Shown: positions 22,701 through 29,577 of the stretch, piece by piece | How the letters are laid out: every line of letters starts with the position of its first letter | Position numbering within the stretch: position 1 is the first letter of the stretch | Assembly: GCF_037042905.1 (NCBI RefSeq) | Contig: NC_087247.1 | Span: forward strand, 26,164,001 to 26,228,000 | Direction: 5' to 3' | DNA length: 64,000 nucleotides | DNA from: Lytechinus pictus | Lineage: Eukaryota | Translations under genes and position numbers: made by a program | The notes under the pieces: model-generated | Told to the model about the DNA's origin: nothing | What the model saw: only the letters and a program-made list of their open reading frames with translations | The model's database searches: none

Positions 22701-25700
22701 TTATAACATGTGAAATGGAAACGATTACTCAAATAATTCTTAAACCACTGTAGGGCTACACCACGTATACCAAAAAACTGTAATTTACAGAGGAGAATAT
22801 CATGGTTGATGACATCAAACGCTTTAGATAGATCAAGAAATAAGCCTAATGTATGAACTTTGTTTGTTAATTTATTTTGGGTGTAATCATGAAGGTCAAT
22901 TAAAGCATGTGCACAGGAGGATTGTTTTCTAAAACCGTACTGAGAGTCATCAAGGAGATTATATTTATTTATATGATTAAAAACCCTATTGTAAATCAAT
23001 TTTTCTAATATCTTAGAAAAACAAGGGAGCAAAGTTATAGGGCGATAGTTAGAAAATATATGGGGATCCCCTTTCTTAAATATGGGTATAATTTTTCCTA
23101 CTTTGAAGTTCATAGGAACCTTACCAGATAAAAAGGACAGATTACAAATATGTACAATGGGTTTAACAATAAAATGGATAACATGTTTAATAGTATATTG
23201 CGTAAGTCCTTCGAAATCTTGGCTTTTGGAAGAATTTATACATTTAACTATATTTAAAACCTCTGATTCATTGGTTGGGTGAAAAAATATGGAATTATTG
23301 CAAGGGACTTTTAAAAAGGAACTAAAATGGCACTTAGGGTTTTTAATATGTTGAGATTTAAGTTTGACAGCAATGCTAGAAAAATATAAATTAAATTCAT
23401 TTACTATCGATTGAGGATCTGTTAACTTTCTTTCTTCTTTAAAAAAATAACTAGGATATTGACATTTTCTTTTCTTTCCTAATAGATTATTAATAACTTC
23501 CCAGGTTTTAGACATCTTGTTTCTATTCTTTTGTAATAAATCACTAAAATAGGTTTTCCTCGCAGACTGTAAAATGGAGTTCAATTTATTTCTATAATGT
23601 TTATATTTATTTTCACTGATATTATTTCTTTTTTTGCAAAATATTTTATATAATCTATGCCTTTTATTTATACATTTTAGAAGTGAAGGCGTAACCCAAG
23701 GTTTTCGTGGGGTATTCTTTCTCTTTATTTTACGGGGAGCAAAATTATGTTTATACGTAGTTTTAAATAAATTTATAAAGGAGTTATATGCATTATCTAC
23801 ATCACATGCTGAGAATACTTCGTTCCATTCTAAAGTAGCTAAATCTTTCTTAAATGAACTTAAACTTGATGGATCTGTAAGTTTTACATAAAATAAAGAC
23901 GTTGGTTCTTTGTATAATTTAATAGAAAGGTTGGTTATTTGGAAAATGGGTAAATGATCAGTTATTCCACTATAAAAAACACCAGAATGAATATCTTTGT
24001 CGACTACATTTGTGAATATGTTATCAATCAATGTTACAGACCGTTTACAAATTCTTGTTGGTTTGTCAATTAATGGACGAAGAGAATTATTATACATAAT
24101 GTTTACAAAATCATTAATGTGTTGACAAGTATTATATTTAAGAAGATCTACATTATAATCACCCATTAAAAAAATAGATTTATTTTCTGTGGATATTGTT
24201 CCAAGACAACTATTGAAATTTTCATTAAATTCAAGAATGGGTTTATTAGGGTTTCTATATATAATACCAACAATAATATTTTTTGAACTATCCGAAATAA
24301 TTTCAATAAAAAGAGATTCACAAATGGTTTCTGGTAAAGATATATCCTCCCTTACTTTAACATTAAGTGAATTATTAACCAAAAGTGCAACACCCCCACC
24401 TTTCCTACCTTGTCTGTCATGATAAAAAGTATAATTATCTCTATTAAATAATAACGGGATATTTTCATTAATCCAGGTTTCACTAAAACCATATATAGAA
24501 AATTTTAACTTAATTTGATTAAGAAATTGATCAATAGCGAAATAATTTTTATTAAGACTTCTGGAATTAAAATGGAGAATACTAAAGTTATGTTTGTCAT
24601 CAGTGGTAAAATCTGAATTATCATTGAAATCAATAGGGAGCCAGTACTTAACAGGTTTATCAAATGTAAAAAAATTATTATCTGGATCAATATCATCAAG
24701 TATTCCACTTTCATCAGAATCAATATATGTCGAGAACATATCAAAATTATCATTATCAACGGTATCATATTGCACTTCAGAAAATATACATTTAAACTCT
24801 TCATCATTTACTTCATTGAAAGGAAAAATATATTGGAGAATATCCATACAGTTGTATTTGCATGTTCACATTCACACTTCAATCAACATTCAAAGCATAC
24901 ACAGCAAAAATAAAAATAACAATTAGGAAATCATTTCTGCAGTCATAATATTTTACTTATCTTTTAAAAATAAAAGAAGAACACTTATTACCTGCAAAGT
25001 GGCCATTCAGTAATGGGTTTATGTTGAGGTCAGCAGCCTGTTACCTCAAATACATCTTAGGCCCAATATACACGTGTGCAGGTTTTGAAACCACCTCCAA
25101 TGCCCTGCAATTTGGTGCATAGACACATACACTGGAAGTAGAGTGAAACCGCATCAATCTACTTTATCGATGACTATTTAAGTAACAAGTGTGCCTTTCT
25201 TTTCACGCCAGCATTTTCTATTGTTCATGAGCAATAACTATTAGCTATTAACCTATTTCTAGTTCAGTGGTCAAGCCGCCTTTAAGGTGTACTCGGTGCA
25301 TTCCAGCAGTCAAAAATTATGAGGTGATACACATACGTCGAACCGCTTTGGGCCGGCCTCAGTCCACCTTTCGACGTATGTGTATCTCCGGCCTAAGATA
25401 ATAGTGCCTCAGATACATCTCTATCAATGGGTATTTTTTATTTTGTGAATAGTTTATTTTTCTTCATCTTTCAAGGTGCATGTGATTCTGGTGTATTTTT
25501 TATAATCCATTTACTTACTTCAGCTAGCTAACGAAGCCATCAATCCATGCCAGATCACCCATGAATTAGCTGAAGAGTTTGGTGAGATCGTGAAGCGTGA
25601 CCAGGAGAAGTTTGTTGAAGCCTTCGGTATCTGCATCAAGTATAGTTTGAAGAAGCTTGCAGAGACAGATGAATCCCTTTCCCTTGACCAACTTACAGAG

Positions 25701-28700: not shown

Positions 28701-29577
28701 GGACGCTTTATCCGACAAGTCCAATTTTATCCGACAGTTACCATAGTAACAGTGCCTCTCAGCCAATCAGACTCAAGGAAAGATGTCAGATCTGACAACT
28801 TGTCGGATAAAAATGTTGATGAAACGCCCCCCTGGTTTACATGTATGTCAAAATGGTACCTGATTTTTTCTTACTGCTGAATATTTCCTTTATGATCTTA
28901 GCAAGATTTTGTTTGTAACGTTTTAAAAACATAACTTAATTCATTAAATGATACAGTTAACGGCAGTTCTTTTGTCAAGTTGTATGTGAACCAACATAAA
29001 TACCATTTGCTTAATTATCAAAAGTCTTTCAGAATTAATAACAAATGGCAGATAACCTTATTTTGGTAATATTGCATATGCATAGATTCCAGGCCGGGGT
29101 TCACAGTCGGACATGATAAAGGAAGTAGTGCGGAACCACAGCCCTCTGACCCTTGTCATTGATGAAGTCGCGACTGAAGCGGATGCTGCAGCGGTCCTTG
29201 CCACCAGACAGAGGGGTATCCAAGTGATTGCTGCAGTACCTGGACAGACCCTCCAGGATGTCATCCTCAACCCCAATCTGAAGCACCTCTCTGGAGCAAT
29301 TCAGAACATGGTCTTTGGCCATCCCGGTCAGCAGGTTGTCGCAGGACGCACTGCGATGCAGAGGACACAGCCAGCAGCCTTTGACATCCTGGTGGAAATG
29401 TATGATCGATACCGCTGGATTGTGCATACGGACTTCACTCGAGCCATTGACCTCTGCCTTCAGAGAGTACCAGTTGGTGTCCAGGAGAGAAGAGTGTTCA
29501 TGAAAAAAATATCAGAAGATACCAAAGGAGTTCCTCAAGTGGTAGTGAAAAACCTTGTGGTTACCTATCCCCTATAG
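14191..29577 (+). CDS. Gene B: ~1634 aa multidomain protein with Egalitarian-like winged-helix repeats, acidic repeat linker, degenerate DEDDy/EXD1-like exonuclease and Ycf45/SpoIIIAA-family AAA ATPase
   Basis: Eleven GT-AG coding exons with compatible phases: 14191-16788, 17175-17393, 17820-17897, 18271-18494, 19230-19581, 20781-21074, 25524-25735, 26451-26606, 27847-28069, 28521-28577 and 29086-29577. Total 4905 nt, open throughout. Motifs include SILK/[73 protein letters not shown] and NHSPLTLVIDE. Confidence 0.88.
17175..18494 (+). CDS. Gene B exons 2-4: degenerate DEDDy (EXD1/Egalitarian-type) 3'-5' exonuclease-like domain
   Basis: FLTSGSILKVVFG...[17 protein letters not shown]...LPESLNFFG...YLYQKM parallels the EXD1/Egl pattern LE....ILKVIHD...G..L.NVFDTQVA...L..LL......LY..L. 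Confidence 0.65.
19705..20422 (+). mobile_element. Second HINE/DINE-1-like family element
   Basis: 5' ttatacccccgcc...gggggtata hairpin, (gtcg)n microsatellite, four ~155-160 bp internal repeats, and a 3' ggggtattaatcaccttcagtgatatttctagtt end. Confidence 0.7.
21453..24930 (-). mobile_element. CR1/L2-group LINE with an intact ORF2, antisense in intron 6 of gene B
   Basis: Contains the 1036 aa EN-RT ORF. Its 3' UTR has a (TG)n tract, a stem-loop, AATAAA and an (ATTGA)n tail at 21453-21505. No ORF1 is visible. Confidence 0.9.
21737..24847 (-). CDS. LINE ORF2: APE endonuclease plus reverse transcriptase
   Basis: HFNSRSL, SETW, GGGVA, MGDYN, IDNIF, TDHLP; NYRPI, QYGFR, FLDLSKAFD, GVPQGSILGPLLF, LFADDTN, KFLG. 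Confidence 0.95.
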   Translation of the reverse strand: MDILQYIFPFNEVNDEEFKCIFSEVQYDTVDNDNFDMFSTYIDSDESGILDDIDPDNNFFTFDKPVKYWLPIDFNDNSDFTTDDKHNFSILHFNSRSLNKNYFAIDQFLNQIKLKFSIYGFSETWINENIPLLFNRDNYTFYHDRQGRKGGGVALLVNNSLNVKVREDISLPETICESLFIEIISDSSKNIIVGIIYRNPNKPILEFNENFNSCLGTISTENKSIFLMGDYNVDLLKYNTCQHINDFVNIMYNNSLRPLIDKPTRICKRSVTLIDNIFTNVVDKDIHSGVFYSGITDHLPIFQITNLSIKLYKEPTSLFYVKLTDPSSLSSFKKDLATLEWNEVFSACDVDNAYNSFINLFKTTYKHNFAPRKIKRKNTPRKPWVTPSLLKCINKRHRLYKIFCKKRNNISENKYKHYRNKLNSILQSARKTYFSDLLQKNRNKMSKTWEVINNLLGKKRKCQYPSYFFKEERKLTDPQSIVNEFNLYFSSIAVKLKSQHIKNPKCHFSSFLKVPCNNSIFFHPTNESEVLNIVKCINSSKSQDFEGLTQYTIKHVIHFIVKPIVHICNLSFLSGKVPMNFKVGKIIPIFKKGDPHIFSNYRPITLLPCFSKILEKLIYNRVFNHINKYNLLDDSQYGFRKQSSCAHALIDLHDYTQNKLTNKVHTLGLFLDLSKAFDVINHDILLCKLQFFGIRGVALQWFKNYLSNRFHFTCYNNFVSDRKRIQCGVPQGSILGPLLFLIYINDLSSSSSFFRFILFADDTNLIACHKDFNRLILQVNRELENVIQWFDANELIINNDKTCVLYFNRKSHPYNCKDIRILINHVNLNVCTSVKFLGIILDDTLSFQDHRQYIANKISKNIGILRKLRISLPQNVLLMLYNCLILPYLYYCTITWAAVGKTKLESLYKLQKKALRICTNSHFQAHSRPLFFRLQTLTIYDIYTFQIAIMMFNVNNSIAPKIICQMFTLNKSIHSHNTRSCIKYHYPKVSSQSLLNSLRHNGPRIWNNLPNNFMSCTTLSSFKVLLKRQLVSSYSL
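25057..25396. mobile_element. Probable MITE with a 17 bp subterminal hairpin
   Basis: ttaggcccaatatacac ... gtgtatctccggcctaa ends, and a perfect inverted repeat at 25326-25342 / 25370-25386. Confidence 0.45.
25524..29577 (+). CDS. Gene B exons 7-11: Ycf45/SpoIIIAA-family P-loop ATPase domain
   Basis: Colinear Ycf45 motifs: [15 protein letters not shown].NR...IGLT, Walker A [9 protein letters not shown] (27968-27994), [25 protein letters not shown], NH.P...IDE (Walker B 29152-29166), QRGIQ, NP.L..L.G.I and F...VEM. Confidence 0.92.
26705..27034. mobile_element. Foldback-type palindromic element
   Basis: The arm accatatgttggtagaacataatgaaaacccc...aaatttggtgggaatcggtccatggggg is mirrored by ccccatggaccgattcccaccaaattt...gggggtttttcatcatgttctaccaaaatatggt. 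Confidence 0.75.
28675..28831. mobile_element. Short MITE, a well-preserved member of the ~150 bp family
   Basis: gggagcgttttatgaa ... ttgatgaaacgccccc flanked by ctg on both sides. Internal tccgaca repeats. Confidence 0.7.

Follow-up and report, generated by a model that had tools for sequence, protein, structure and literature searches.

How did an animal genome come to encode an ATPase of the Ycf45 family? The question is raised by a locus of the sea urchin Lytechinus pictus, situated in a 64,000-nucleotide stretch (hereafter the window) that corresponds to positions 26,164,001-26,228,000 of the 82-Mb chromosome contig C3. A preliminary description, made from the sequence alone, had recognized at 25524-29577 a 'plastid/bacterial-type' Ycf45 domain split over five exons, and had offered two explanations, either an old horizontal transfer or an ancestral eukaryotic gene lost in most animal lineages. 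Our results revealed that the Ycf45 exons are the last five of 11 in a far larger gene, LOC129257538, whose product appears to carry an Egalitarian-like head in front of the ATPase. The two explanations were the right alternatives, and the evidence leans to the ancestral gene, transfer being less favoured.

The five exons, with AG 5' of every exon and GT 3' of the first four, are separated by four GT..AG introns, and their splicing in silico gave a single open frame of 379 codons followed by a stop. With the last exon as query, an exhaustive HMMER protein search retrieved a 1634-aa protein whose final 163 residues were matched at 100%; its database record is XP_054751863, 'uncharacterized protein LOC129257538 [Lytechinus pictus]'. 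The 379-aa translation is identical to residues 1256-1634 of this protein save for I1415V and T1418I. When the whole of LOC129257538 was mapped back by tblastn and splice reconstruction, 11 coding exons were placed at 14191-29577, the allele in the window encoding 1631 aa. The preliminary description was thus right about its five exons and four joints, while the rest of the gene, which starts at 14191, had been missed. The coding exons are as follows.

14191-16779, + strand: coding exon 1, with the start codon, a WH_Egal (Egl-domain) winged helix and a long acidic and serine-rich low-complexity region (tblastn, splice reconstruction and Pfam)
17175-17393, 17820-17897 and 18271-18494, + strand: coding exons 2-4, a putative degenerate Egalitarian-type 3'-5' exonuclease-homology region with the DEDD motifs lost (gene-model mapping and alignment)
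19230-19581 and 20781-21074, + strand: coding exons 5-6, a serine/threonine-rich linker with no Pfam family (gene-model mapping)
25524-25735, + strand: coding exon 7, where the Ycf45 module begins with N-terminal helices and the conserved D..GR.P motif; the 3' intron is in phase 2, as in paralog A
26451-26606, + strand: coding exon 8, N-terminal (PAS-like) subdomain with the conserved TLHR motif at its end
27847-28069, + strand: coding exon 9, Walker A (GNPGVGKST) and the VVDTYNE motif
28521-28577, + strand: coding exon 10 (19 aa), the conserved I.GDGD.PH..IGGARR segment; a 19-aa exon is common to paralog A
29086-29577, + strand: coding exon 11, Walker B (LVIDEV), the His-box-like RGIQVIAAVPG (His replaced by Pro), the C-terminal beta region and the stop, without R3H

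Transcript contigs from three runs (X1, X3 and X21, belonging to two studies) contained exactly the four GT..AG joints and followed the exons without mismatch, confirming the canonical splice sites described earlier; contigs of run X20, which is DNA-like, span the introns. The X21 contig is 5647 nt long, and about 3934 nt of it lie upstream of 25524. This length is accounted for by 3765 nt of N-terminal coding sequence and a leader or untranslated region of about 170 nt, indicating that the Egl-like and ATPase parts are present on one mRNA. Furthermore, the transcript contigs run unspliced from 29084 through the stop to beyond 29900, so that neither another coding exon nor a hidden R3H exon lies downstream. 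Neither R3H (PF01424) nor PF25516 was found in the full L. pictus protein at E<=0.01, and the earlier statement that the frame ends soon after the ATPase, with no R3H domain, was upheld.

The Pfam family PF19568 (Spore_III_AA) matched residues 1395-1539 of the full XP_054751863 (P0001) with 35.7 bits against a cut-off of 27. Exons 9 and 11 matched positions 124-173 and 220-274 of this family in colinear order, single exons alone remaining below the Pfam cut-off. The match to TIGR02858 was weak and far under the equivalog cut-off, indicating that the module is not a true SpoIIIAA. In the window translation (copy B of two copies, see below) both Walker motifs are intact, and all 36 of the 36 columns that are invariant over 30 diverse members (alignment A3) are kept in P0001. 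The histidine of the THG motif, which we take to be the His box of PilT-like ATPases, is replaced by proline in copy B. An AlphaFold model of residues 1240-1634, made with a 30-sequence alignment, had a mean predicted local distance difference test score (pLDDT) of 89.2 and a predicted template modelling score (pTM) of 0.86. Compared with Atlas models of plant, cyanobacterial and Chloroflexota Ycf45 clusters, it gave template modelling (TM) scores of 0.76-0.82 over 324-342 residues. Foldseek against the PDB returned the archaeal RuvB-like Holliday junction helicase 5f4h together with PilT, PilU, FlaI, CpaF, VirB11 and DotB (E 7e-15 to 1e-9). The predicted module has the same two subdomains as PilT, VirB11, FlaI, CpaF and 5f4h, an N-terminal PAS-like one and a RecA-like ATPase, although its identity to them is 11-16% and the TM scores are 0.4-0.5, the monomer fold alone being compared. 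Searched with the ATPase profile, the PDB sequences yielded generic P-loop matches only, indicating that there is no close relative with a solved structure. By its Pfam match and predicted fold, the module is a complete ATPase of the Ycf45/SpoIIIAA family, with the fold of the hexameric traffic ATPases of the PilT/VirB11/FlaI class.

Within this family the nearest known proteins are Ycf45, SPD1 (SEEDLING PLASTID DEVELOPMENT 1) and the bacterial R3H-AAA proteins, which have the same core motifs (D..GR.P, TLHR, Walker A, VDT.NEI, ARR, NH, Walker B and RG.Q). Against named members from plants, algae and bacteria, identity amounts to 33-38% for the L. pictus module and to 44-56% for the crinoid one. 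However, these proteins combine PF19568 with PF25516, and the bacterial ones also with the R3H domain PF01424, whereas the sea urchin module lacks both tails. Unlike them, it is nuclear, intron-bearing and animal, and instead of being free-standing it makes up the C-terminus of a 1634-aa Egl-like protein. It also differs from Ycf45 and SPD1 in falling outside the plant and cyanobacterial groups in our tree (with moderate support) and in the proline at the THG histidine. A separate observation concerns bacterial Ycf45/R3H-AAA proteins of 830-1050 aa (P0063, P0289, P0301, P0308 and others), in which an intein with a homing endonuclease (PF14528, PF14890) lies within the ATPase.

The head of the protein was identified mainly by its winged helix. 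WH_Egal (PF23713) was matched in the L. pictus protein with 37.8-41.3 bits against a cut-off of 27, the 41.3-bit match lying at residues 155-214; elsewhere in echinoderms the scores were 30.1 bits in Diadema and 18.3 bits, under the cut-off, in Anneissia. By BLAST, exons 2-4 are homologous to exonuclease-like regions of the Diadema and L. variegatus proteins, which in turn align with the crinoid and protist exonuclease domains (alignment A1). The crinoid domain scores above the cut-off of Pfam PF01612, and among solved structures it is nearest to Drosophila Egalitarian (5e-12). The DEDD catalytic motifs are replaced in the echinoid exonuclease-like regions, just as Egl has lost them, while they are kept in the protist fusion proteins described below. 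On these matches, the ATPase module would form the C-terminus of an Egalitarian-family protein with WH_Egal and a degenerate exonuclease domain. The combination of a WH_Egal (Egl-domain, LOTUS-like) winged helix with a nuclease-dead exonuclease-homology domain is that of Drosophila Egl/EXD1. A 2026 structure paper described Egl as three winged-helix 'Egl domains' and an exonuclease-homology domain that jointly grip RNA stem-loops, and no ATPase was reported (PMC13186709). The full-length Drosophila Egl chain in the PDB was unmatched by our ATPase profile. The sea urchin protein thus differs from the solved fly chain, where no Ycf45 ATPase is detectable, by an additional C-terminal one.

Exactly two Ycf45-type loci were found in the L. 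pictus genome by searches with protein queries, which were needed, as an exon-by-exon search of the whole genome with the PF19568 profile gave no match. Copy B is LOC129257538, and the part of copy A that falls in the window is the following.

2241-5987, - strand: paralog A, 5' exons (tblastn of P0014, genome searches and splice sites)

The Ycf45 exons of copy A are upstream of the window, at C3:26150721-26155780, the end of the gene lying 13 kb before the window. Copies A and B are arranged head-to-head with their start codons (5987 and 14191) about 8.2 kb apart, and it is possible that a divergent promoter region is common to both. Orthologs of copy A are L. variegatus LOC121411387 (1662 aa) and S. 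purpuratus LOC579642. An older NCBI record of the latter was already named 'uncharacterized protein ycf45', so the domain was not new to animal annotation. All four module introns and the 19-aa micro-exon have identical position and phase in A and B, and the present introns would predate the inverted tandem duplication, in early echinoids, that gave rise to the two copies. Orthologs occur in four other echinoderm genera. For example, Diadema antillarum has a B-type protein of 1146 aa, and in the crinoids Anneissia and Antedon, proteins of 885-1219 aa combine PF01612 with PF19568. Some of the copies vary at catalytic motifs. The THG motif reads HS in L. pictus A and HG in L. variegatus A, and Diadema antillarum copy B (P0004) has D-R rather than D-E in Walker B and GQPRSGKT as Walker A; judged by these residues it is probably catalytically dead, the module nonetheless being kept. 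Another Egl-type exonuclease gene, the third of L. pictus, was observed about 10 Mb away (C3:15853173-15860580). Its DEDD motifs are intact (VVALDCEG, HDCRKD, YAATDV), Drosophila Egl is the best match of one of its exons (1.6e-8), and no Ycf45 module was present within the 20 kb read. From its sequence this gene may be the classical Egl or EXD1 ortholog.

The layout of the echinoderm proteins is not confined to animals. In each of our protein searches the best 120-150 matches were listed, and among the matches listed about 25 metagenomic proteins, together with one of Phytophthora citrophthora, combined PF01612 with PF19568, without R3H. A further 60 exonuclease-ATPase fusion proteins make up an Atlas cluster that is 100% Eukaryota, mostly Oomycota, and fusion proteins are also encoded in the NCBI assemblies GCA_040384145.1 and GCA_040384225.1. 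According to precomputed Pfam lists, R3H and PF25516 are absent from all of the echinoderm and protist fusion proteins. The metagenomic contig of P0047 carries EGF, IBR and Hep_59 genes beside the fusion, indicating that it is eukaryotic; the exonuclease domain of P0047 matched Drosophila Egalitarian at 2e-27 against 3e-9 for EXD1, any other nuclease also being far weaker. Two protist fusions had weak WH_Egal matches of 14-21 bits, and one fusion carries an RRM. Consistent with these findings, YCF45 was reported earlier from Phytophthora ramorum and Naegleria gruberi, both of which lack plastids (Maruyama et al., 2009; PMC3087521). The fusions of oomycetes and uncultured eukaryotes (such as P. 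citrophthora P3T76_009666 and P. ramorum YCF45) share with the echinoderm proteins the domain order, the Egl-type exonuclease, the lack of R3H and the side of the tree. However, the echinoderm proteins match WH_Egal strongly and contain long low-complexity inserts, and the echinoids have lost DEDD. Variations on this architecture exist in that P. citrophthora P0401 (1588 aa) contains two tandem Ycf45 modules together with ubiquitin, BTB and exonuclease domains. Two tandem Ycf45 modules were also observed in Chlamydomonas schloesseri P0006 (1753 aa), which fell in the FastTree analysis on the side of the echinoderms and fusions and not with the plastid-type green-algal proteins.

For the phylogeny, the ATPase module was cut from 96 proteins, namely 7 echinoderm modules, 25 fusion modules (23 metagenomic and two from Phytophthora), 12 plant or green algal, 35 bacterial (30 from named genomes), one EukProt protein and 16 further best matches. 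In a quick tree the echinoderms formed one group with a Shimodaira-Hasegawa-like approximate likelihood ratio test (SH-aLRT) value of 97, and the echinoderms plus fusions were split from all bacteria and plants with a value of 96. A careful maximum-likelihood (ML) tree of 76 rows gave an ultrafast bootstrap (UFBoot) of 99.6% for echinoderm monophyly. Within the echinoderms, crinoids were split from echinoids, and L. pictus B grouped with Diadema while L. variegatus A grouped with S. purpuratus, indicating that the A/B duplication predates the Diadema-Lytechinus split. With extra best matches included, FastTree placed only three short metagenomic fragments, and no named animal, inside the echinoderm group. 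These fragments (P0002, P0005 and P0083; ENA metagenome, 163-177 aa), two of which share 42-49% identity with the last exon, may represent exons from other echinoderms, or from other animals, whose DNA was present in the environment. The rare layout, in which an Egl-type exonuclease comes first, the ATPase last and R3H is lost, was judged stronger evidence than the ATPase tree alone, and as both agree, they place the echinoderm genes, so far as sequence can tell, in a eukaryotic Egl-ATPase lineage. There would be a eukaryotic branch of Ycf45, shared by oomycetes, uncultured microbial eukaryotes, crinoids and echinoids, in which the ATPase follows an Egl-type 3'-5' exonuclease without R3H. The label 'plastid/bacterial-type' was misleading for a module that has no R3H tail, is fused to an Egalitarian-type module and groups with eukaryotic fusions, with moderate support and a plant affinity unrejected.

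The introns of the gene contain the following further elements.

26708-27034, no strand assigned: palindromic repeat of 327 bp resembling a miniature inverted-repeat transposable element (MITE), in intron 8, with 128-nt inverted arms that are 88% complementary
28670-28835, no strand assigned: short dispersed high-copy repeat of about 165 bp in intron 10 (genome search and contig depth)
21737-24847, - strand: uninterrupted 1036-aa open reading frame (ORF) of the non-long-terminal-repeat (non-LTR) retrotransposon type in intron 6/7, outside the gene product (ORF list; class judged by eye)

Copy numbers are candidate places from a first-pass genome search, of which 40 per repeat were scored. For the repeat of intron 8 there were 889 such places, and the 40 scored were copies at 82-88% identity on many chromosomes; its summed contig depth in public runs was several hundred to about 1200. 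The repeat of intron 10 had 2586 candidate places, with the 40 scored lying on many chromosomes, mostly at 92-96% identity, and its summed contig depth in public runs was 15,000-27,000. The host-type MITEs reported earlier in the introns were thereby borne out as two dispersed high-copy repeats. By eye, endonuclease-like and reverse-transcriptase-like motifs were seen in the ORF of intron 6/7, which may be a young intact element.

As for the origin of the gene, we lean towards vertical descent from an old eukaryotic Egl-ATPase gene that was lost or truncated in most other animal lineages. Several observations weigh against it. No asteroid, holothurian, hemichordate or other metazoan was among the matches listed, the named animals being echinoids and crinoids only, and YCF45 was reported absent from Monosiga, yeast and Dictyostelium (PMC3087521), so that vertical descent needs many losses. 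The ATPase phylogeny, which the preliminary description had proposed as a check, did place the echinoderms with the eukaryotic fusions, but this grouping had a UFBoot of 80% only, the echinoid branches are long, and in the approximately unbiased (AU) test a clade of echinoderms and plants was not rejected (p=0.064). Copy B departs from the consensus at 24 of the 73 columns with >=90% conservation outside echinoids, the THG histidine among them. Furthermore, the exonuclease region of L. pictus B has no PF01612 match and no PDB match, and a phmmer search of the PDB, with the 1260 N-terminal residues as query, was likewise negative; the Egl-type identity of the region is therefore drawn from WH_Egal and from the transitive alignment via Diadema and the crinoids. 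The third L. pictus gene, which keeps its DEDD motifs and has no ATPase nearby, raises the possibility that A and B form a sister subfamily of the classical Egl/EXD1 and are not its orthologs. The restriction to crinoids and echinoids, the absences in Monosiga, yeast and Dictyostelium and the third, better conserved exonuclease gene, which could be the true animal ortholog, would also be expected if a whole exonuclease-ATPase gene of a protist, for example an oomycete-like or marine one, had passed into the echinoderm stem before the crinoid/echinoid split. The transferred gene would then have gained introns and host repeats and been duplicated in echinoids. In the ML tree the echinoderms do adjoin one small metagenomic fusion group (P0061, P0403 and P0313), with a bootstrap of 44%. 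However, no supported nesting of the echinoderm clade was found in any sampled protist group, and WH_Egal, a domain defined on animal Egalitarian, reaches a full Pfam score in echinoderms as against the 14-21 bits of the protist fusions. The absence from other animals is itself weak evidence, as it rests on the best matches listed. Taken together, we consider such an ancient transfer between eukaryotes unlikely.

Still less probable, in our judgement, is that a bacterial or plastid/algal Ycf45 was captured independently and fused to a resident Egl-like gene in the stem echinoderm, the likeness to the protist fusions being convergent. With R3H-AAA proteins from many bacterial phyla the crinoid module shares 48-56% identity, roughly as much as with anything else, and the AU result for the plants would fit such a capture. 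However, with many phyla equally close, the bacteria offer no obvious donor phylum, the ML tree and 80% of the bootstrap trees join the echinoderms to the fusions, and the same rare fusion, with the exonuclease upstream, the ATPase downstream and R3H lost, would be needed twice. It is finally very hard to believe that the locus is an assembly contaminant or a decaying pseudogene open by chance, although several family-invariant residues are lost in copy B. The frame is open across 11 exons, spliced transcripts were present in three runs, the gene lies on an 82-Mb chromosome contig and has host repeats in its introns, the paralog has conserved introns, and orthologs exist in both echinoids and crinoids. 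Between the window and RefSeq, the module shows 2 allelic differences in 379 residues, as against 34 in 866 (4%) for exon 1, a hint of constraint on the module. On these grounds contamination, recent insertion and a dead gene were rejected, in agreement with the preliminary description, and vertical descent remains the reading that we favour.

What the protein does can be approached from its parts. Throughout the family, the ATPase is invariably accompanied by a part that binds nucleic acid, which is R3H in bacteria and, in the eukaryotic branch, an exonuclease with a winged helix or RRM; this makes a role in RNA-protein remodelling the likeliest. The fold of ring-forming motor ATPases also points to a nucleic-acid-linked role, since among solved structures it comes nearest to one described as a Holliday junction helicase. 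SpoIIIAA of B. subtilis is generally viewed as an ATPase of the secretion type. In contrast to the PilT/VirB11-type traffic ATPases, the sea urchin module has no membrane-machinery partner, and a role on nucleic acids is suggested for it by the fused domains. The winged-helix and dead-nuclease parts would bind RNA, and the ATPase module, probably oligomeric, would couple nucleotide binding or hydrolysis to the assembly or remodelling of RNA-protein complexes. The complexes that are assembled or remodelled in this nucleotide-dependent way would most likely be those bound by the Egl-like head. Loss of the THG histidine hints at weaker catalysis in copy B. With Walker A and B intact and this histidine and other invariant-type residues replaced, copy B may act more as a nucleotide-gated switch than as a fast motor.

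Our literature search found no paper on ycf45 in sea urchin, nor on SpoIIIAA in eukaryotes with an exonuclease; the sea urchin domain was present in databases only, and the Egl-ATPase lineage as such seems undescribed. In the literature Ycf45 figures as a gene of plastids and cyanobacteria whose function is unknown, and Egalitarian as an RNA adaptor that has no ATPase; this locus, which is expressed in an animal and has been conserved since before the crinoid/echinoid split, joins the two. In the eukaryotic branch of Ycf45, the R3H nucleic-acid-binding tail would have been exchanged for a head of Egl-type exonuclease and winged helix, a swap that points to an RNA-related role for the whole uncharacterised ATPase family. 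The locus is also a clear case of a 'bacterial'-looking animal gene that can be explained without recent transfer. It further raises the testable idea that Egl-like adaptors formerly had a motor of their own. Tentatively, and with more doubt than for vertical descent, the Egalitarian family may have begun early in eukaryotes as an ATP-driven machine, a single protein uniting a winged helix with an active 3'-5' exonuclease and with a PilT-like Ycf45 ATPase. If this is true, echinoderms are the only animals seen so far to keep the motor, while flies and others kept the nuclease-dead RNA-binding half. As transgenic and knockout methods are available for L. pictus, the function of the gene is testable, and should the motor reading be true, sea urchin embryos would offer a tractable system for the action of this ATPase on RNA-protein complexes.

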